The notes beneath the pieces are model-generated. The model did not search any database, was not told where the DNA came from, and was given only the letters and a program-made list of their open reading frames with translations. A stretch of DNA of 63,703 nt, the filler included, from Octopus bimaculoides (lineage: Eukaryota), in assembly GCF_001194135.2 (NCBI RefSeq). It is 9 parts of 6 records of this genome, joined end to end, with 100 filler letters (N's around TTAATTAATTAA, not from the genome) between each part and the next. Parts side by side here need not be neighbours in the genome. Positions count along the whole stretch, not along the records: positions 25,355 to 36,110 come from NC_068983.1; 8 more parts are not named here. The stretch is one strand, 5' to 3'. A program made the position numbers and the translations under genes. Positions 25,355 through 36,110 of the stretch are shown piece by piece. Every line of letters starts with the position of its first letter. Position 1 is the stretch's first letter.

Positions 25355-25387
<33 letters not shown>

Positions 25388-25397
25388 ATATATATAC

Positions 25398-25428
<31 letters not shown>

Positions 25429-25473
25429 TGTATGTATGTATAACTTGTTTTCAATCTCTGAACGATAGATATA

Positions 25474-25598
25474 CAGTAACAGTACCGGATAGTAATGTTT
25501 ATATGTCAACAGAATGTGGTAGTCTTGTAAAAGTCGACGTTACTGTTGTTTTAGCCCCAGGAAAATATCTTTTCCATTACTATCCGGTACTGTTACTG
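25474..25598. mobile_element. Tc1/mariner-type MITE, 125 bp
   Basis: Perfect 24-bp TIR CAGTAACAGTACCGGATAGTAATG, flanked by TA on both sides (25472-73, 25599-600). Confidence 0.75.
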
Positions 25599-27717
25599 TA
25601 TATCTCCAGCCCAGAGATTTAAAACAAGTTGTTTTTGTCTATACGAGATCAGTGATTGTGTGTCGCCAAAAAATATATATAATATTTGCAAGTGGAGATA
25701 GCTTTCGTCACTAGCTTGTGGTTATCTCACTCTGAGGACGAATAACGTCCAAAATCCGAGGTCTGCGAGTATCACATAAGGCTATAGATATATAGATAAA
25801 TAGATAAGATAGATAGATATGCACAGACACATATGTATGGATCAAAAAGTTTAATTCAGAATCCTTGGTACTCTGAGTTTTGAGCGTGATGCAAGTGTTC
25901 AGCCATTGAGTCAGACTCAATGACCGAGAGACTAGCGAAACGTTTGAAACTCAGAGTACAAGGAATTTGAAACAAACTGTTTTGAACCATACATGTAACT
26001 CACAATAAATGTGTTGAGTGCCTTCTTTTGTTTTTCTCATCACTCCTATATNNNNNNNNNNNNNNNNNNNNNNNNNNNNNNNNNNNNNNNNNNNNNNNNN
26101 NNNNNNNNNNNNNNNNNNNNNNNNNNNNNNNNNNNNNNNNNNNNNNNNNNNNNNNNNNNNNNNNNNNNNNNNNNNNNNNNNNNNNNNNNNNNNTATATGT
26201 ATATATATATATATATATACACATATAATCCTAAATTCTCCCCTCACTCTATCTACCTCTATTTCTATTTCTTTTCTTTTCTTTTACCACTTAGTAGCCA
26301 CCACCGCTACCATTCTGTTATTGAACGTTGATATGTTCGCGTCTTTTTTCTTGGAATGTCTGCTATATCAGGACTTTAACCCACATTGGTATCCGCAGGA
26401 TTGCACCTGAAGACTTACGCTCATGGATCTTCACAGGATTGCACCTAAGGACTCATGCTCTTGTTTCTATAACGTCGGAAAGTTGAACTATGAACATCTA
26501 TGCTTTTTTCTTTCCATCCCCTTTTTCTTTTTTCTTTCCATCCCATTTTTCTTTTACTCCCTTCCACTATGTCGTCATCTCAATATATACCATTCTCATT
26601 TTCACTATTTCTTCTATTTGTCTCTGATGACGGAATATCAGTGATATCCCAGAAACAGCTGTAAAACTGAATTTTTTTCCAATGATAACGTTGTATACAA
26701 CTTGAGATGCTTGCCTTGCCTTAATGTTTTTGTCCTCTTTAACAACCATATATCCACCGCATCGGAAATCTGGCTCCATAACTACCGTCTCGGCTATAAC
26801 CTTGGAACCCTAGTAATCCGTTACAGCACTTACCTAGCGTATCTAATCATTTAGATCACTTGTGAAATAAACGCCACTACTTTGTATATATATATATGTA
26901 TAGGCAATTATGCGGATAATATAAATTAAATAGAGAATCTATTTATACAAAATGCTAAACCATCGTCAGATTGCTATGCATTATAGTTAAACTTGCCTTC
27001 ATATAGTCTCTGCCGAGTCTCACTTTTGAATGTGTGGTCTTGCGTGGGGGCTAACTTGGCTTTTATGGTTGATTGTTGTGAAAAGATGTTTTGGAAAAAT
27101 TTTAGTTGATTAAATTCTGAGTTATGTTATTGTTTAGAACTCATTCATGCATGCAGAATCTTGTCAACAAGCCTGTAGCATTTCTCTTTTGTTAGGTAGG
27201 CACAAGATGTGACAGTATTTGAGTTCAACTTTTTAATAGATTTATTGATTGCATGTTTATTTCTTTACATTGATTTATAATGTCGGCCACTAAGAATATA
27301 TTTTCACTGCGTTACTCAGTTCATTATGAATTGTTCATGATCGGATTTCAGTTGTTTCGTAATTCGTCTACGCTGTTGTTTCTTAACTTAAGGTTCTTCT
27401 GTGGTGTTCTTCAAAGTTGCTTCCGTTTTCAAGGAGTACAATGCATAGAATGATATAGATCCAGCCTCTTTATTTTGAATCAAATTTTAATTTAATCTGC
27501 CATAAACAATATTAATTGTAATACTCCTGTCGTTTTTAATGTTTCCTGAATATATTAAACATTTCTTCCGTCCGTCAGATCATTCAGATTAAATGCTTAT
27601 TAGGATGGCAGTAACTCAATTTAGAACCAGTTAAATGTTTTAGTGAAGATGGTGAGCATCGTCCCCACAGCCATATGCGGTTAATAGATTGGTTTCAGTA
27701 AACAATTTGAAACTTAC

Positions 27718-27816
27718 CTTTCTGATGATTTTCTGAAGTTGCCGAATTCCAATGAGTCGTAAAACAAACCAAAGTTTCAGAGAAGTGAACGGACGTCCGC
27801 AAGGAATTTGCCATTT
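27718..27816 (-). CDS. DDC-like: AADC/DDC-family PLP decarboxylase exon E (99 nt): [33 protein letters not shown]
   Basis: Acceptor catgttttag and donor gtaagt, phase 0/0. Aligns to DDC [33 protein letters not shown] and has the same size as the corresponding human exon. Confidence 0.92.
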
Positions 27817-29440
27817 CTAAAACATGAAAATATACAGGAAGAACATTGAGCTACGATTTTCTTCTTTATCAAGCAATCTCTCTCTCTTTCTCTCCGTATC
27901 ACACACACACACACACACACGCACACACAGGTACGTGTTTGTGCGCATAAATTGCAGAAACGTCTGTTATAATCGGAGTGTAATTTTTTATAAACTTCAA
28001 AACAAATAAAATCCTTGAGTTTATATTGAAAATCTGGTAAAAAAAAACTGTCTAATTATTAGACGTGAAATTAGGTGACGCCTGGAAAAGTCTGCGTTCA
28101 TTGGCAGCTGATATTATTATATAGAAATAAGTAATATTTTATGATTAAAAAGAGATCTCTGAACATAGTTTTATTTTAAAGTGGTTTCTTATTTATAGAA
28201 ACGTATATATTGCTGGCTAATCCTTTTTTGCAGAGTATGATTTCTAGAAATATAATCTGAAATACAAATATAATATGGAATACAAATAATAAAGCAATTG
28301 TTAGCGTAAATTTGGAGTACACAAGTATTTTCCCCTTTCATTGATACTTATATCAATATATATTTGTTTCCCGTTTATACTTACATATATGTGTATATGT
28401 GTATATGTGTATATGTGTATATGTGTATATGTGTATATGAACGTGTTTGTGTGCACGCTCGCATGTATACGTTTCCTTTAAATTTACACGTTTAGGAAAA
28501 GTATCTAAACATGAATACATATATGTTAAGATTAGAGAACATTCTCTTTACTTGCTAACATAATTCCTTTCTTGTCCAACTGAAACTGTCTTAAATATGT
28601 CATACAAATCACTTTAAATACAGAAGGGAATGGTATGTAAACTGGGATTTAGTCGAAATAGAAATAACATTTATTGATTCGATTAGAAAAGCAAATAAAC
28701 TTTGAACAATTTTAATAATATACCTAAGATCACTGATTATAATCAAAATTTAAAAATTACTGTATCTGTAATACTAAATCGATAATGAGTTCTGTTTAAG
28801 CTAAAATATTTTGAAATTTGCAACCTCAAGGCCGACAGGAAAAGGAACAATGTAACAAACCGTATGTAAAATTTGATTTGCACAAATTCACTGAATATGC
28901 GACAGAAACAAATAATTTAAATAAGATAATATATCACAGTATGTATTAGTGGAAATGTATTTATGAATGAAAAATATAATATTATGTATACTACAAATAA
29001 TGCAAACTCAAAATTGTTGAAAATTATTAATTTTTTACTTTTGGCTGCGAATATTTCTGCGAAATGTTAACAGAATAAAAATAGTTAAATAGGAAAATAT
29101 AGACAGAAAACTGAATAATTAAATCATAATCATATTTTTGTCTAACCGTAGGGAAAAGGCATCGCTATATTCTCTAGCATTTAGATTTATTACAGAAGAA
29201 AATGAGTTCCTCTGAGGTCAGAGCTTTTGGCTTATAATATTTTGAGGATTTTATGAAAAAAATATCCCAATTACAATTGCCGTATATTCCTAACCACCAG
29301 GCCATGCTCCCCCACAGTACATTCTAATATATGCTAGTAGAACATGAATTTGTTTTGATATGCATTGAACTGAAAACTCGTCCATCAAATTCTTATACAT
29401 TTCCTCAAATCGTGATCTTTGGTGACGATCCTAAAGATCC

Positions 29441-30120
29441 CAGGTCTGATCAATAAGTATCCAGAATGTTGCCATAGTAATGAGCCTAAAGCACAAGCCT
29501 CTTGACACAGATGGACTATGAACACTGCTGTGCACGCGCACTAAGTTTTAACGTTCTAACTCACTTTCGCTGTTTACAGCAGTGCATGGAAGGAAAGGTT
29601 TACTCAAGGTTGCGGAAAGTGTATGGAGAGGAGTGTATAAGCCACACACAAGTGTACGAATGATTCAGACGTTTCCAAGATGGCAGAAAAAATGTCGATA
29701 TTTACGAACGTTCTGGAAGACTCGCCTTTAGGGAAGAGACGCGTGTCTGCCAAGTTTGTGCCAAAGTTGCTTTCAGTTGACCAAAAAGACACTCAGGTTT
29801 CAGTTCCTTGATTGCGTCGAGAACGATGAAAACTTCTTGCAAACTCTGCGTAGGCCTCTGAACAGGTATCACCAAACTTTTCGTAAAATTTGATGCAACT
29901 TCACTGCTCAGCTTACTCTGTTATGGTCCATACGACGATCACACGCTACACACGTTCCTTCAAAGTACTATTTTAAATAGTGGTAGTAAGGTAGAACGTT
30001 AAAACTTTGTGCGCATGCACAACAGCTTTTAAGGTAACTCTGTGCCAAGCGGCTTTGTTCTGCGTGCTTTAGCTTCGTTACTATGGTGACAGTCTGGATA
30101 CTTATTGATCAGATTACGTA
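29441..30120 (+). mobile_element. Internally deleted mariner element with long (~120 bp) imperfect TIRs
   Basis: The ends are inverted (ggtctgatcaataagtatccaga...gttttaacgttcta / tagaacgttaaaact...tctggatacttattgatcaga). The interior encodes a broken HTH: KVYGEECISHTQVYE*FRRFQDGRKNV..YERSGR and VSAKFVPKLLSVDQK. Confidence 0.85.
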
Positions 30121-30239
30121 TTTCAAACTAAAAATAGCTGGTGCATTTCTTGAGTCATTAAATAAAGGTGTTTGGTGCTGCCGATATCAGCGGTGGGGAC
30201 AAGGGTTCGGCTCTTTACGCCTCTGGTCTTTCTTGTTCT

Positions 30240-30620
30240 GCTCTGTACTTGCCAGACTCGGATACTGTCAAGGGCCCTTAAGAGCTGCTTGAATTCCATT
30301 GGTATCAGGACGCCTCCCAAGGTTAAGGGTTACTATTGGCCGGATTTCGTATCCAATGAACGACTTTACTCAGAAACTGGGATGCATCTTGTTACTTGTA
30401 TGATTCAGGATTCAGACCTGACTTACCGTGTTCTCTTCACTAAGGATCCGACTGGGTTGACGGCTCGTGTTGGGTGACCACATGCCACATGGTCACCACA
30501 GACGATGATGTATCTCACAGTGATGAGGACTGTTTGAGACCCTGCTTGATAGATCGCCCGGGAGGACCCGCTAAGATACCGACAAACAGCGAAATCAGCG
30601 ACGCGCTGCAATGGCGCATG
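30240..30620 (+). mobile_element. RTE-type LINE C-terminal relic
   Basis: GYYWPDFVSNERLYSETGMHLVTCMIQ...RVLFTKDPTGLTARVG*P resembles RTE ORF2 ends (W.D.VSNE.L...GRP). Confidence 0.65.
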
Positions 30621-31179
30621 ACTCTCACCTGACTTGACCTGAATAATCTATTAAGGAGATCGAATATACCCATTTTTATCTATAGTTAAGATAGTATCGT
30701 TCATGTAATTCAACTTTTTATAGTTACTAACATAAAAACCGGGTAGAGAGCAGTTGCAATAAATCAAAATTGCCAACATCATAATCCTTTTGATTTTTTA
30801 GACACTATTGTAAGATTTCAAAATCAAAGTATAATACTTTCCATTATCATAGCTGAACGTAAGTTTTCTGTTACCATTCTTAAGGTGGTGCTCCAGCATG
30901 GCCGCAGTCCAATGACTGAAACGTGTAAAAGAATAAAAGAATTCTTTCGTTCTCTCTAATGAAATTCTTTGCTAAGCAACAACCTCTTCAAATTCACAGA
31001 TTTTATATTTAAAATGTTCAAAAATGGTTAGAATATTTGATATAATCATGTGGAGCATAAGTTCATGAGTGGATAGAATACCATTAAGAGAAAATGAAAT
31101 AATATTTCTTGGAATAAAATCTCCACGACTGCGTCATTTGGAATTTTAATTAATTTTGTCTTCTAGCATATAGAAGGAC

Positions 31180-31680
31180 AGAGATGCAGGAAGAGCAGTA
31201 AAATGTGACAACCGACGCAGACTTTGTGCAGATTTCACCGACATCAAAAGCAGTTGTCCAAAAGTGTCATCAGAGTGTTATCTACCGATCAGACATGATG
31301 TTGTAGCTAGGACACTGTATAACGAGATCCGTCAAAATGAAAACGCTGAGGACAAAGAAATAAGAACCCACTGTATGGTGGAAGCCATAGCTACTCATAA
31401 TAAAAAGGAATACTGGTGGGGTGTCCTAGTGAAAACCTCTATAAAATATAAACACAACGCACCTTATATCATGACTTGGGACAGAGAAGAGAAACTGTGT
31501 ACAATTGTGGAAATCACCTGCCCAGTGGATGTTAATATAAAGCTGAAGATCAGTGAAAAAGTAAATACCTACGGAGACCTATTGAGAAATTTACATTTAC
31601 TCAATTCATATTACAAGTTCAGGTTTATACCTGTAATTATTGGGGCACTGGGGTATGTAACACTGATCTCTCTATCTAAC
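31180..31680 (+). mobile_element. R4/Dong-like non-LTR retrotransposon relic (zinc knuckle + restriction-like endonuclease)
   Basis: RRLC...SCPKVSSECYLPIRHDVVARTLY...HNAPYIMTWDREEKLCTIVEITCP...FIPVIIGALG: CCHC remnant, RHD motif and decayed PD..(D/E) RLE motif. Confidence 0.8.
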
Positions 31681-31734
31681 CGTTCTCTTCTCCGAAGTAA
31701 AGCTGCGTTCCATCTGAAATACTGAAGACTACAA

Positions 31735-32500
31735 AAGTAATCAGTGCCTAAGCGCTTTAATGTTCTGCCTTTGAAAACTGTTGAAAAACAGGCTGAGCTC
31801 CCTATTAAGTTGGACACTGCACTCAACACAGTTGATATCAATGATGACATAGAATCATCTGGGAATGCTCTGCGTGATTGCAACGCACTCTGCATCTGTA
31901 GAGGTTCTTGGACGTCCTGTTCGTAAACATCAAGATTGGTTCAATGATAACAACATAGTCATCCTACAATTGATAGATAAAATGCACAGCTCTAACAAAG
32001 AATAGCTAGAGCTCATCTGGAAAAGAGAATGCCTCGGAAAACGCAGAAGACAATTCCAACGTGCTTTGAAACAGATGAAGGATGCTTGGTGGTTTTTCAA
32101 GGCTACTGAACTACAAGAAGCCGCAAACTGAAAGCATTCTAAAGCCTTTTATGATGGCCTTAAGAAGGTGTATGGTCCTCAAGAGTACAGTGTACTCTTA
32201 TTTTGTCTCCACCTAAGTCACTAATGATGATTTTTTCTCCACCACAATCACTAATGATAATATCTGTTCCACAGAACACTGAAACACCGGAACTGTCCCT
32301 GGAGCCAAACTTCCTAGAAGGGGTAAACTCTATTAAACAGATCTCTTCTGGTAAAGCATCTGGCAGGGATGCTATCCCTCCAGAAATCTACAAACATGGT
32401 GGACATAAGCTTTTAGAGAAACTCCATGACCTCTTCATAAACATCTGAAATGTAAGTCGTGCACCACAAGACTTAAAGGTTGCCTTAATACAACATCTGA
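31735..32500 (+). mobile_element. RTE (BovB-like) LINE ORF2 relic
   Basis: SIKQISSGKASGRDAIPPEIYKHGGHKLLEKLHDLFINI*...PQDLKVA is the typical pre-RT GKA.G.D.IP.E segment; the frame is broken upstream. Confidence 0.8.
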
Positions 32501-33580
32501 GAGGAGAGCATGCAGCACAGAGCTAACTCCAGCCACCAAAGTATCACGGTAACTCTAGATTAACCCACGAGGCTGGATATGATTAGAAAGATAAGGTTCG
32601 GGTGTACAGGGGAGCTAGAAGGTGGTTAGATAACATCATATGTGATGAAACCAGTGGTACCTCCCCTAGATATAGAACACACAAACACATGAATTTGCAG
32701 AATACATACATACAAACGTACTCACACGTATGCATATATGCATGCATATACACGCACATACATACATACATACATACAAACATACATACATAAACACAAC
32801 AAACAGAAAGATGGCAGCTCTGATAACGAACAGTCAACGACTATTGAAGAGGTTGTAAGACGCAAAGAAAATTTTAGAAAAAATAATTAAGTAAACGAGT
32901 GGAAATCAAACCGGTGACTGTGTTAATTAATAAGGCACTAAAAGAGACTGACATGTCACCAACTACATTAAAACAATTCTGATAATTAAAAAACTAAACG
33001 TTTATACGCTATCAACCTATAACATTAAATAGTTATAAACATTATAACAATTGACAATGGAGTGAGAAAGTGGTGCATATGTAGAACAATGTACCATATA
33101 ATAATGTTCCCTCGCTACCCCACGGGGTAACACCTTTTCCATTTTTGCTGCTGCTGCTGCCATGAAAAATCTATTGTGAATGCAAGATTCTCCGTTAATC
33201 CCAACAAACATATATATTGTAACTTATGATAAAATATTTCAATGTTATTTTAATGTAATGCTTCGTATTAACAATAAATTATGGGATATATTATATTGAT
33301 GTTTACTTCTGTTCTATTAGAGTTAATTAATATCAAGCCTGTGTGTGATGCGAAATAAAAATGTAGACAAAATAGAGCCTGGTACTTCCCCGTGCACTTT
33401 GCTAACTGTGCCATCCACCATGAGCTCTAATACTAAATTATATTCCTTTATAATTATAATAGTAACGGCATTAACCATTCATATCTCATTAAAATTAAAA
33501 TGGTAATTAAAACAATAAAGAATAATACAGTAATACAATAGTCATAGAAATTTACATAGAATAATATAAAATTATCTCAC

Positions 33581-33671
33581 CGTAAAATTTGGCATTTCTG
33601 AATTCTGTGTACATTGCAAATATTCACCAGGCTCGGGAATAGAATCGACAAGTTTATTGCTATTTTGTAAC
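33581..33671 (-). CDS. DDC-like: DDC-like exon D (91 nt): (W)LQNSNKLVDSIPEPGEYLQCTQNSEMPNFT, catalytic flexible loop
   Basis: Acceptor tgtcttttag and donor gtgaga; phase 2/0 fits the neighbouring exons exactly. Tyr aligns without gaps to human Y332. Confidence 0.85.
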
Positions 33672-34176
33672 CTAAAAGACAAAGCAGAATTTCGGTGAAA
33701 AAAAAAAATTCTACTTTTAAAATATTCTATATTATGCGTCTATTTCAGAAATCAGAATACTATGTGCTATCTTGGTAACCTATTTCTGATTGACCATTTA
33801 CGGTTCTATACTGTTATCCTAATCTATTAACTCTATCCCTCTCTAAATTAATAAACATTGCAACTATCATAACGTGGTATGTTAATAAATTATATTGGGC
33901 GATTGATTTTATTACAGTTATAACACTTTTTAGTCATTACTGTATTTGTAAATACAATTAAACCACAAACATAATGCATGAATAGAAAATACATTCTCTA
34001 GACTCTTTAATGTTTGCTCTTGAATGTTTACAAGTCTAAAAGTTGATGGTAATGTTTATTCTTTACAAATATATTAAATACACATGACTTGATAACACAT
34101 TTCTGTTTAGGTTTATTGATTAATCAACGTAGAAAATAATTTACATTTTAAGAAGACTAAATAGAATTTTACTTAC

Positions 34177-34244
34177 CATAATACCGAACAACCTGTAGGT
34201 ACTTGTAACCATTTGTGGGGACTCACACAAATGGAATCTGCATA
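34177..34244 (-). CDS. DDC-like: DDC-like exon C (68 nt): YADSICVSPHKWLQVPTGCSVL(W), contains the PLP lysine
   Basis: Acceptor ttttatag and donor gtaagt, phase 0/2. PHKW corresponds to human P301-H302-K303-W304. Confidence 0.93.
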
Positions 34245-34563
34245 CTATAAAATAGGAATCAAGAACTGAATATGAAACATGATATTTCTTCTAAATTTAT
34301 TTGAAAATATCAAATTTAACATGATATATTAACCCAAAGATCTGAACTCGGACGATGGTACTGAACTCAAAAAGTACACTCCACGTGGTACATATATTGC
34401 GGTTTAATGTGGACTGAGGATGTTTAAAATTGAGGGGGAAATTGGAATAATTTTTTATTCATTTGTAAACTATACTGAAAGTGTCGCTAATCTGCATTGA
34501 CCTTTTCTATCTCTTTTACTCAAATAAAGTTTCGTTTTATGTCAGATAACTAGTTGCATCTCA

Positions 34564-34630
<67 letters not shown>
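34564..34630. repeat. (TAA)n microsatellite inside a DDC-like intron
   Basis: Direct reading of the sequence. Confidence 0.95.
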
Positions 34631-34744
34631 AAATAGCAGATGTTCTAATGTATGAGACCCTTAAACTATCTATCATCATAATAAAGTATTGAAGTCTACA
34701 GCTCCGTGTGTTATTTTCAGTTTTATTAATTGCTTAGGACTTAC

Positions 34745-34839
34745 TTCCACACCGTTCATCAGATAACGGTATTCAGGACATATAAATGCATTTCCTGCAT
34801 ATGCAGCGTCTATGTGCAACCAGATACCTTCATCTTTAC
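34745..34839 (-). CDS. DDC-like: DDC-like exon B (95 nt): (C)[31 protein letters not shown]
   Basis: Acceptor tttattacag and donor gtaagt, phase 1/0. [15 protein letters not shown] is the AADC/HDC/TDC signature carrying the PLP-binding Asp. Confidence 0.95.
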
Positions 34840-35498
34840 CTGTAATAAACAACACATAATTATGACACAATCGTATTTACTTTCAATGAATCTGATAAAT
34901 ATTAAGACTATACCTTGGCATAGCATCAACTTATGTACTTGAATAGAAAAATATTCAATTATAAAGAATATATTATCCATGTGTACTTGGAAGTGAAGTG
35001 CAGCAGAATTAAAGACTTGATTATAAAANNNNNNNNNNNNNNNNNNNNNNNNNNNNNNNNNNNNNNNNNNNNNNNNNNNNNNNNNNNNNNNNNNNNNNNN
35101 NNNNNNNNNNNNNNNNNNNNNNNNNNNNNNNNNNNNNNNNNNNNNNNNNNNNNNNNNNNNNNNNNNNNNNNNNNNNNNNNNNNNNNNNNNNNNNNNNNNN
35201 NNNNNNNNNNNNNNNNNNNNNNNNNNNNNNNNNNNNNNNNNNNNNNNNNNNNNNNNNNNNNNNNNNNACCTTTGGACCTCTTTTTAGTTTTTTGATATCT
35301 GAGATTAGATATATTTATACGCGCTCATCCCTGAGGAATATGTTAGCTGTGGGTGGCTAATAACAATAATGTCCTCAAGGAAATTAGAATATTACGAATG
35401 GAAATGACTACGACTACTGGAAAAAGTAGCTGTAAAGAGGAAGATGTAGCTCCCAATTAGTATGAAAATTAATTAGGTACATAATTAAAACAACTTAC

Positions 35499-35565
35499 AT
35501 ACAGCACCAATTTCTTTAATGTTATCAAATGCACACACAGAAGTTGTACCCAAAGTTGAACAAAT
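35499..35565 (-). CDS. DDC-like: DDC-like exon A (67 nt): ICSTLGTTSVCAFDNIKEIGAV(C)
   Basis: Acceptor cattcctttcag and donor gtaagt, phase 0/1. Matches the TLGTT..C.FD motif of group II decarboxylases. Confidence 0.95.
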
Positions 35566-36032
35566 CTGAAAGGAATGAAATCTTAAATATATTCCTGCAG
35601 AAAGGCGAAATAAATGCGTGATATTTAATAACACGCTTTCAGCATTGTTGTTTATAAAGATTTCACGATCCACTCTTGAAATATTTCTCCCACATCATTT
35701 GAGATTTATGGAAATAATAATACATTTAAAAGTTTATGCTTATAAGAGAAACGACTGTAACTGAATTGATAAATCCGTAAACCTATGACAGAAAATGAAA
35801 TCACGTTACACCGCTTTGTAGTCTACTACTTTTTATTGTATTTTCTCTTATTTCAATTTCTTTTCTTCTCTTTCACCTTCCCCGTTTATCATTCGTAATC
35901 ACTTTCGCTATCGGCCTTGTCCTGTTTTCTTACAATATGTTGACTGAGATACACCAACACATTATATACACAATATGCACATGTATGTATGTATATGTGT
36001 ATGTATACATGTATGTATTATCTCTCTCTCTT

Positions 36033-36110
<78 letters not shown>

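Follow-up and report, generated by a model that had tools for sequence, protein, structure and literature searches.

PAR2, an expressed and divergent DDC-derived paralogue in a tandem gene cluster of Octopus bimaculoides

Within a stretch of 63,703 nucleotides of Octopus bimaculoides DNA (hereafter the window; nine joined parts of assembly GCF_001194135.2), positions 27718 to 35565 hold five minus-strand exons that encode 140 amino acids related to the aromatic-L-amino-acid decarboxylase (abbreviated AADC) DDC. They are exons 6 to 10 of an annotated, complete and expressed O. bimaculoides gene, here called PAR2, whose product is a group II pyridoxal 5′-phosphate (PLP)-dependent decarboxylase. 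As judged from its residues, PAR2 belongs to the Pfam family PF00282 yet bears the diagnostic signature of neither canonical DDC, HDC and TDC nor the known aldehyde synthases. The clade of octopus paralogues to which it belongs has replaced, as a set, the pocket wall supplied by the partner subunit and the network that closes the active site, with the residues of PLP chemistry retained.

The piece of the window that contains the gene (25355-36110, from NC_068983.1) is AT-rich (34% G+C) and is interrupted by two runs of N (26052-26193 and 35029-35267); in its six-frame translation DDC-like peptides occur on the minus strand only. Exon 6 of 12 (35499-35565; L001 24035-24101 in the locus of XP_014775473.1) lies between AG and GT sites, encodes ICSTLGTTSVCAFDNIKEIGAV plus one nucleotide and includes T246, with residues numbered here and throughout as in human DDC. 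Exon 7 (34745-34839) carries D271, exon 8 (34177-34244) encodes YADSICVSPHKWLQVPTGCSVLW with H302 and the Schiff-base lysine K303, exon 9 (33581-33671) encodes LQNSNKLVDSIPEPGEYLQCTQNSEMPNFT and with it the catalytic loop and Y332, and exon 10 (27718-27816) carries G354. All five have a polypyrimidine tract with AG on the acceptor side and GT(A/G)AG on the donor side, and their phases are compatible (0/1, 1/0, 0/2, 2/0 and 0/0), the split codons being T|GT for Cys, which matches the human DDC residue at that place, and TG|G for Trp. Together they amount to 420 nt, or 140 amino acids with zero stops, and their outer edges coincide exactly with the ends of the 27718-35565 interval.

Splicing of these exons is seen directly in RNA. 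An 881-nt contig assembled from run X25 (k-mer depth 517) matches all five, exon 10 included, without a mismatch, and its unaligned ends read from each exon into the next, the loose ends of exons 6 and 8 both entering exon 7. The joint 33671/34177 is present in X25 contigs and in the raw RNA reads of runs X24 and X34. Exon 6 is joined directly to exon 7 (loose end at 35495) across intron 6, which bears an assembly gap of 239 N (35029-35267) that is also present in GCA_001194135.2; since the X25 contig links the flanking exons, the PAR2 mRNA is continuous and in frame over this gap, which is harmless for the reading frame. No additional exon occurs in the equivalent intron of the paralogue PAR3 (527 nt) or of O. 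sinensis (745 nt). The RNA continues beyond the five exons, both 3′ of exon 10 (GATATAAAATTGGCCCAC...) and 5′ of exon 6 (...GGTTGTGTACCATTTTAT), into sequence for which there was no match anywhere in the window; exons 5 and 11 lie outside the piece, at L001 20486-20629 and L001 36329-36430 of the PAR2 locus. The full gene comprises 12 coding exons, the exact translation of which is a protein of 497 amino acids. A further X25 contig of low depth (2.7), at 27464-27733, passes from exon 10 into intron 10 without splicing and probably represents pre-mRNA or intron retention.

An exhaustive HMMER search with the 140 residues returned one outstanding relative, the O. bimaculoides UniProt entry P0074 (E=5.5e-55), and a later profile search retrieved a set of Octopus proteins. 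An earlier impression that the 140 residues had no close relative, which came from a word-indexed search yielding only proteins of ≤240 amino acids with ≤57% identity, was discarded once these HMMER and profile searches had found the real family. The 140 residues are contained exactly in XP_052821923.1 (P0231) and in XP_014775473.1 / A0A0L8H4D6 (P0344), the 497-residue protein named "aromatic-L-amino-acid decarboxylase isoform X1" in RefSeq and UniProt. Both proteins include the ten-residue stretch DRAKGCVPFY read from the RNA upstream of exon 6, and P0344 alone includes the one read downstream of exon 10 (DIKLAHIFRE), P0231 skipping exon 11. The piece itself is 100% identical to L001 (GCA_001194135.2, CM046603.1), where a large N run lies at either end of it. 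The five phase-compatible GT-AG exons without stops proposed in a first-pass annotation of this DNA thus agree with both the splice sites and the RNA contig, and the search for a full open reading frame that it recommended leads to the 12-exon protein, of which the 140 residues represent exons 6-10 only. It had also put the sequence forward as a divergent paralogue and its best candidate for an undescribed system; the gene was already in RefSeq and UniProt under an AADC name, and it is one of three clustered copies between which gene conversion has occurred. No paper on these paralogues was found in the literature searched, accession numbers included, coverage of which was incomplete.

All of the 140 residues align with PF00282 (140/140, profile positions 202-341; E=8e-53, 179.9 bits, the curated cut-off being 27), a match that chance cannot explain, and they include the core motifs HIDAAY (exon 7), with the D271 that pairs with the pyridine nitrogen, and SPHKW (K303, exon 8). 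Among structures, the best relatives are pig and human DDC (~E-46; PDB 3rbf, 1js3), to which the whole 140 residues align with one 2-residue gap, ahead of HDC, insect DDC, plant aromatic amino acid decarboxylases and insect DHPAA synthase. Unchanged in PAR2 are T246, D271, H302, K303, Y332 and G354 and, outside the window, the PLP-stacking H192, for which His is found at the aligned position of P0344 (...SEETHSSF...). Replaced are N300S and N308P/F309T/D310G (PTG) in exon 8, K334Q, H335C, D345N, Y346F and R347T in exon 9, and H348K, L353C, R356P and R358T in exon 10, and PAR2 is two residues shorter than the human and pig enzymes between Y332 and W349. The catechol/indole pocket of canonical DDC is likewise altered (I101D, G102V and F103I in loop 2 of the partner subunit, and T82S, Y79F and F309T), the Asp at 101 being found in PAR2 of both O. 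bimaculoides and O. sinensis. Unlike human and pig DDC, PAR2 has replaced the ring contacts I101 and F103, the loop-3 network, N308-F309-D310, K334-H335, R356 and R358.

The functional weight of these positions is known from the human enzyme, in which carbidopa is touched on its catechol ring by I101 and F103, F103 is displaced in the variant G102S, R347, a residue key to catalysis, is in contact with D345 and with L333 of the catalytic loop, and L353 contacts F103 and R347 (PMC8003434). The neighbouring subunit supplies loops 2 and 3, the variants R347Q/G and L353P are purely catalytic defects, G102S is also a catalytic defect, and several of the positions replaced in PAR2 are sites of single human variants that cause AADC deficiency (PMC8003434). 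The loop-3 network D345-R347-L353, canonical in DDC, reads N, T and C in PAR2, at positions that are changed in all paralogues. RNA of a PAR2 orthologue from a second species (runs X26, X30 and X31) reads …TENSEMPDFT at the end of exon 9 (33581-33590), with Asp at 345; D345N is consequently not universal in the clade, PAR2 of O. bimaculoides and O. sinensis having Asn there.

The 112 alignment columns that are unvarying in 28 canonical bilaterian DDCs were taken as an invariant set, with a leave-one-out control for each DDC. PAR2 has changed 23 of the 112 and the other PAR proteins 18-20, as against 0-4 in each canonical DDC, 6 and 11 in two TDCs and 9 in HDC. Of the 112 positions, 85 are unchanged in all paralogues and 16 are changed in every one, the majority of these within known active-site segments: M13, D92, G102V, F103I, C111A, A148S/T, T152M/I, L157F, F299V/M, F309T/I, D310G/S, D345N, R347T/M, H348K/T/S, R356P/S and V436. 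At N308P, K334Q, H335C, L353C, S149T and S277N the column is not strictly invariant, but the PAR residue is foreign to the canonical set. Retained in all PAR proteins are H70, W71, W105, E150, H192, S194, H302, K303, W304, Y332 and L333, as well as W349, P352, G354, R355, F357, K361 and R447. D271 is retained in all except the O. vulgaris PAR1 model, which has Glu; PAR1 has changes at T246 and A273, both of which PAR2 and PAR3 retain. Canonical coleoid DDCs (O. sinensis P0234, O. bimaculoides XP_014775466.1, Argonauta hians P0233 and Sepia pharaonis CAE1323298.1) have in common with PAR2 the PLP core and the lineage motifs TELEVIVLDWLAKA.KLP..FLSTS and PHKWLQV; they are, however, only ~54-55% identical to it and retain all 112 invariant positions.

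A neighbour-joining tree (Kimura distances, 38 sequences, 477 columns, 200 bootstraps) united the five PAR sequences in a clade with 100% bootstrap support, and this clade with the canonical coleoid DDCs of Octopus, Argonauta and Sepia with 97.5%. The PAR sequences form a long-branched sister to the Sepia and octopod DDCs, a placement that is not trusted to date the duplication. TDC and HDC lie outside the cephalopod DDC/PAR clade, and the DDCs of other molluscs elsewhere in the tree. PAR2 has its family in common with animal TDC and HDC, and K334Q in common with both aligned TDCs, yet groups with neither. The serine at 354 that accompanies PSKW in HDC and PNKW in TDC is also lacking, as PAR2 has G354 and PHKW (H302), the aligned HDC has S302 and S354, and the two aligned TDCs have N302 and S354. 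No PAR-type protein of squid, cuttlefish or Argonauta was among the top matches of the profile search, an absence that is weak evidence. An AADC-like protein of Aplysia californica (XP_012942331.1, P0133) with VSPHKW (N300S) has changed 14 of 103 DDC-invariant positions in a model without the Y332 loop; it falls outside the octopus PAR clade and may be an independent divergent duplicate.

The residue calls of the first-pass annotation, retained and changed alike, were all right in human numbering when checked by alignment, and its use of G354 and PHKW against an HDC or TDC identity holds for the sequences aligned here. Its description of a lineage-restricted, divergent DDC-derived paralogue with an intact PLP core and a remodelled loop is likewise upheld. 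It had allowed for the substitutions proving widespread inside the ordinary mollusc DDC clade; they were absent from 28 of 28 canonical DDCs, and the PAR sequences form a clade of their own. It had further suggested that the H192 equivalent be inspected for the Asn of insect DHPAA synthase, which in PAR2 is His, and had considered an untranscribed sequence with a ratio of non-synonymous to synonymous substitution (dN/dS, ω) of ~1, in place of which spliced RNA and a ratio below 1 were found.

Estimated by the method of Nei and Gojobori, dN is 0.070 and dS 0.113 between PAR2 and its O. sinensis orthologue (87.2% amino acid identity; ω=0.62, one-sided Fisher p=0.015), and ω is 0.36 between PAR2 and PAR1 and 0.39 between PAR2 and PAR3 (each p<1e-9); for the window exons alone, where numbers are small, ω=0.63 is not significant. 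Differences between the PAR2 orthologues affect 3 of 112 DDC-invariant columns (2.7%) versus 49 of 357 others (13.7%), a five-fold depletion (Fisher p=5e-4). The amino acid difference between O. bimaculoides and O. sinensis is 12.8% for PAR2 and ~4% for canonical DDC, a mis-modelled exon being excluded from the latter. PAR2 is therefore constrained, less so than DDC, under weakened purifying selection, and is not a pseudogene.

The history of the gene is complicated by exchange with its convergent neighbour PAR3. In exons 6-9 the two differ at 5 of 321 nt, yet in exons 1, 2 and 12 dS between them is 0.7-1.3, giving a mosaic; PAR3 and PAR1, in turn, are close in exons 2, 3 and 10. Over a common tract of ~2.1 kb (33549-35646), which takes in exons 6-9 and their introns, the PAR2 and PAR3 introns are 93-97% identical, and elsewhere the exons alone align, at 70-90%. 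This tract is read as the product of gene conversion, and because it spans exons 6-9, four of the five window exons have been homogenised with PAR3 fairly recently.

The near-identity of the tract also affects how expression is read, since PAR3 reads land on the window exons and mimic single-nucleotide polymorphisms. V61M, T71I, Q99E and one synonymous change, entertained as alleles with a high dN/dS, were rejected for this reason, being PAR3 reads in the 2026 RNA runs. In two raw-read runs from that year (X24 and X34) depth on PAR2 exon 10 is zero and all reads of exons 6, 8 and 9 carry PAR3 variants. Only the PAR2 form was assembled in run X25, where contigs cannot prove the absence of others, and run X35 showed neither the PAR2 nor the PAR3 form. 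None of the sampled exon 10 words occurred in 12 other O. bimaculoides RNA runs. PAR2 and PAR3 look to be differently expressed. In the second species, a 1.4-kb contig found in three RNA runs of different years has exon 10 spliced to the same neighbours, with two differences, and the same three runs also contain a contig of another paralogue. The supplements of an octopod venom-genome paper contained nothing relevant to the tissue in which PAR2 is expressed.

The explanation favoured here, which is given somewhat better than an even chance, is that PAR2 is an active PLP decarboxylase whose substrate specificity has shifted away from L-3,4-dihydroxyphenylalanine (L-DOPA) and 5-hydroxytryptophan (5-HTP). 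The PAR2 dimer would form an external aldimine and then perform PLP-dependent α-decarboxylation, with Y332 protonating Cα; decarboxylation is suggested by the presence of decarboxylase-type residues at H192 and Y332. A different substrate is suggested because the aromatic wall formed by F103, F309 and Y79 is lost, so that the pocket would be wider and less aromatic and closure of the site altered. The substrate would be one other than L-DOPA or 5-HTP, or these would be only poorly used, and the product would be a specialised amine made in a particular tissue, probably neither dopamine nor serotonin.

Several points weigh against this proposal. Its mechanism, like the new substrate or reaction specificity suggested in the first-pass annotation, is inferred from residue comparison only. 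Single changes of R347, L353 or G102 cripple human DDC, so that PAR2 could be a poor catalyst, and the phosphate-binding residues are also changed, albeit conservatively (A148S, S149T and N300S). The orthologue ω is high for an enzyme and the protein evolves ~3x faster than canonical DDC, for which relaxed constraint would also serve as an explanation. Gene conversion blurs both the orthologue and the paralogue comparisons, and long-branch effects may have misplaced the PAR clade in a tree built by neighbour-joining only.

The same catalytic argument is the starting point for the alternative that PAR2 is a weak or dead pseudo-enzyme, which could serve canonical DDC or one of the other copies as a regulatory or heterodimeric partner. 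In its favour, single substitutions of G102, R347 or L353 remove most of the activity of the human enzyme, the active sites span the dimer interface, with the altered loops 2 and 3 supplied by the neighbouring subunit, complementing heterodimers are documented for human variants (PMC8003434), and dN/dS is high. Retention of K303, D271, H192, H302 and Y332 in PAR2 and PAR3, and mostly in PAR1, would nevertheless be needless for a pseudo-enzyme, and each run examined had one paralogue without the other, which argues against an obligate PAR2/PAR3 heterodimer; the alternative is considered unlikely.

Distinctly unlikely, on the residues that it would require, is an aromatic aldehyde synthase, in which the remodelled loops would block protonation of Cα and a quinonoid would react with O2 to give an arylacetaldehyde, NH3 and H2O2, in the manner of insect amd. 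The insect enzyme, amd/DHPAA synthase, is a lineage-specific duplicate that adjoins Ddc and has a non-neurotransmitter role in the cross-linking of structural proteins, and PAR2 resembles it (PDB 6jrl) in belonging to PF00282 and in being a lineage-specific tandem DDC duplicate. The catalytic Tyr is flanked by K334Q and H335C, the external aldimine has lost the loop-3 residues that align it, and expression seems restricted to certain samples, all of which would suit such an activity. The two known aldehyde-synthase switches, H192N in the insect enzymes and Y332F in the plant enzymes, are both absent, however, His and Tyr being present in all paralogues. The origin of PAR2 is moreover independent of that of the insect enzyme, and its match to DHPAA synthase is weaker than that to DDC (E=2.4e-34 vs 3.4e-46).

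The RefSeq name implies an ordinary DOPA/5-HTP decarboxylase isozyme that would add dopamine or serotonin capacity in an amine-rich tissue, and the DDC-type G354 and H302, the best structure matches and the grouping with coleoid DDC are all in keeping with it. PAR2 nevertheless has more changes at DDC-invariant positions than either TDC or HDC, enzymes that act on other substrates, it has replaced both the residues in contact with the catechol (F103 and I101) and the catalytic R347 and L353, and an unchanged canonical DDC lies nearby, so that such an isozyme is viewed as quite improbable. That PAR2 is a duplicate decaying to a pseudogene, transcribed but no longer needed, is very improbable, for although the raised dN/dS, the threefold faster protein evolution and a non-canonical acceptor in the neighbouring PAR3 would be expected of one, the 12-exon frame is intact in both O. 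bimaculoides and O. sinensis, dN/dS is significantly <1, changes are strongly depleted at core positions, and the spliced transcript, plentiful in one sample, is found in a second species too.

Tentatively, and with a probability judged to fall somewhat short of even, the octopus tandem DDC duplicates might constitute a small decarboxylase family with a rebuilt pocket, each copy making, in a different tissue, a specialised amine or aldehyde other than a classical neurotransmitter; an amine-rich salivary or venom secretion and the tanning of structural material are candidate settings. AADC-family enzymes determine which biogenic amines an animal makes, and behind each known animal change of specificity or chemistry (HDC, TDC and insect DHPAA synthase) stands a physiology of its own. 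The octopus cluster adds a cephalopod lineage with three expressed and constrained DDC duplicates in which more invariant positions are changed than in TDC or HDC, at residues where a single substitution leads to AADC deficiency in humans. If active, the PAR proteins would illustrate a way of rebuilding the whole loop2/loop3 closure network together and might explain an octopus-specific product; if the family proposal is also correct, co-replacement of that network would have given rise to a new specificity within the animal AADC family. Octopus salivary glands have long been known to be very rich in tyramine, octopamine and serotonin, and for that reason they are one obvious tissue to examine. 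PAR2 is a well supported and testable candidate for a new specificity about which the existing annotation is uninformative. In annotation and single-cell work on octopus, marking monoaminergic cells by "DDC" could mislead, because RefSeq gives all copies the AADC name and lumps two of them as isoforms.

On CM046603.1 PAR2 (1,194,274-1,223,863, minus strand, XP_014775473.1) is the middle gene of the three, with PAR3 (1,155,936-1,190,768, plus strand, XP_014775469.1) converging on it from one side and PAR1 (1,223,827-1,253,610, minus strand, XP_014775474.1) in tandem on the other; an OATP transporter gene is next after PAR1. In O. sinensis the last exon of PAR1 likewise lies upstream of PAR2, and the canonical DDC (P0234) is found ~45 kb from PAR2 on the same chromosome and strand. 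In RefSeq the tandem PAR1 and PAR2 are merged into a single gene with isoforms X1-X6. For O. sinensis, the model "isoform X2" (XP_036356878.1; L004) joins exons 1-6 of PAR1 to exons 7-12 of PAR2, a chimera that reflects either genuine read-through transcription or an artefact of modelling. The acceptor of PAR3 exon 10 is AA rather than AG in the assembly (L002 31069-31070), and the UniProt PAR3 model A0A0L8H5W6 omits this exon (33 amino acids, including the WQIPCGR motif). In the older model of the canonical O. bimaculoides DDC, XP_014775466.1 (P0253), the D271 exon is absent and 10 unrelated residues stand in its place, which looks like faulty modelling on the 2015 assembly rather than biology.

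The remainder of the piece is intronic. It begins and ends within introns 10 and 5, on the minus strand like the exons; the former (25355-27717 in part) holds a gap of 142 N (26052-26193) and high-copy simple repeats, and the latter (in part) occupies 35566-36110. The 5.7-kb intron 9 (27817-33580, minus strand) contains transposon fragments at ~29300-32500 (G+C 0.40-0.44) with transposon-like open frames, including one of 183 amino acids on the plus strand (31174-31722). These frames gave no match in Pfam; they resemble the tail and start of ORF2 of a long interspersed nuclear element (LINE). A copy of the transposon piece with 83% identity lies inside PAR2 intron 2 (L001 13663-13898), and a related piece is translated within the faulty UniProt PAR1 model A0A0L8H4P3. 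Beyond the window, the last exon of PAR2 (L001 39336-39590) encodes a C-terminal extension, marked by a paired-cysteine motif (…KDCLKCMISIFH; …SKCFKCIII in O. sinensis), that has no counterpart in canonical DDC, PAR1 or PAR3 and might be a candidate lipidation or membrane-anchoring signal.

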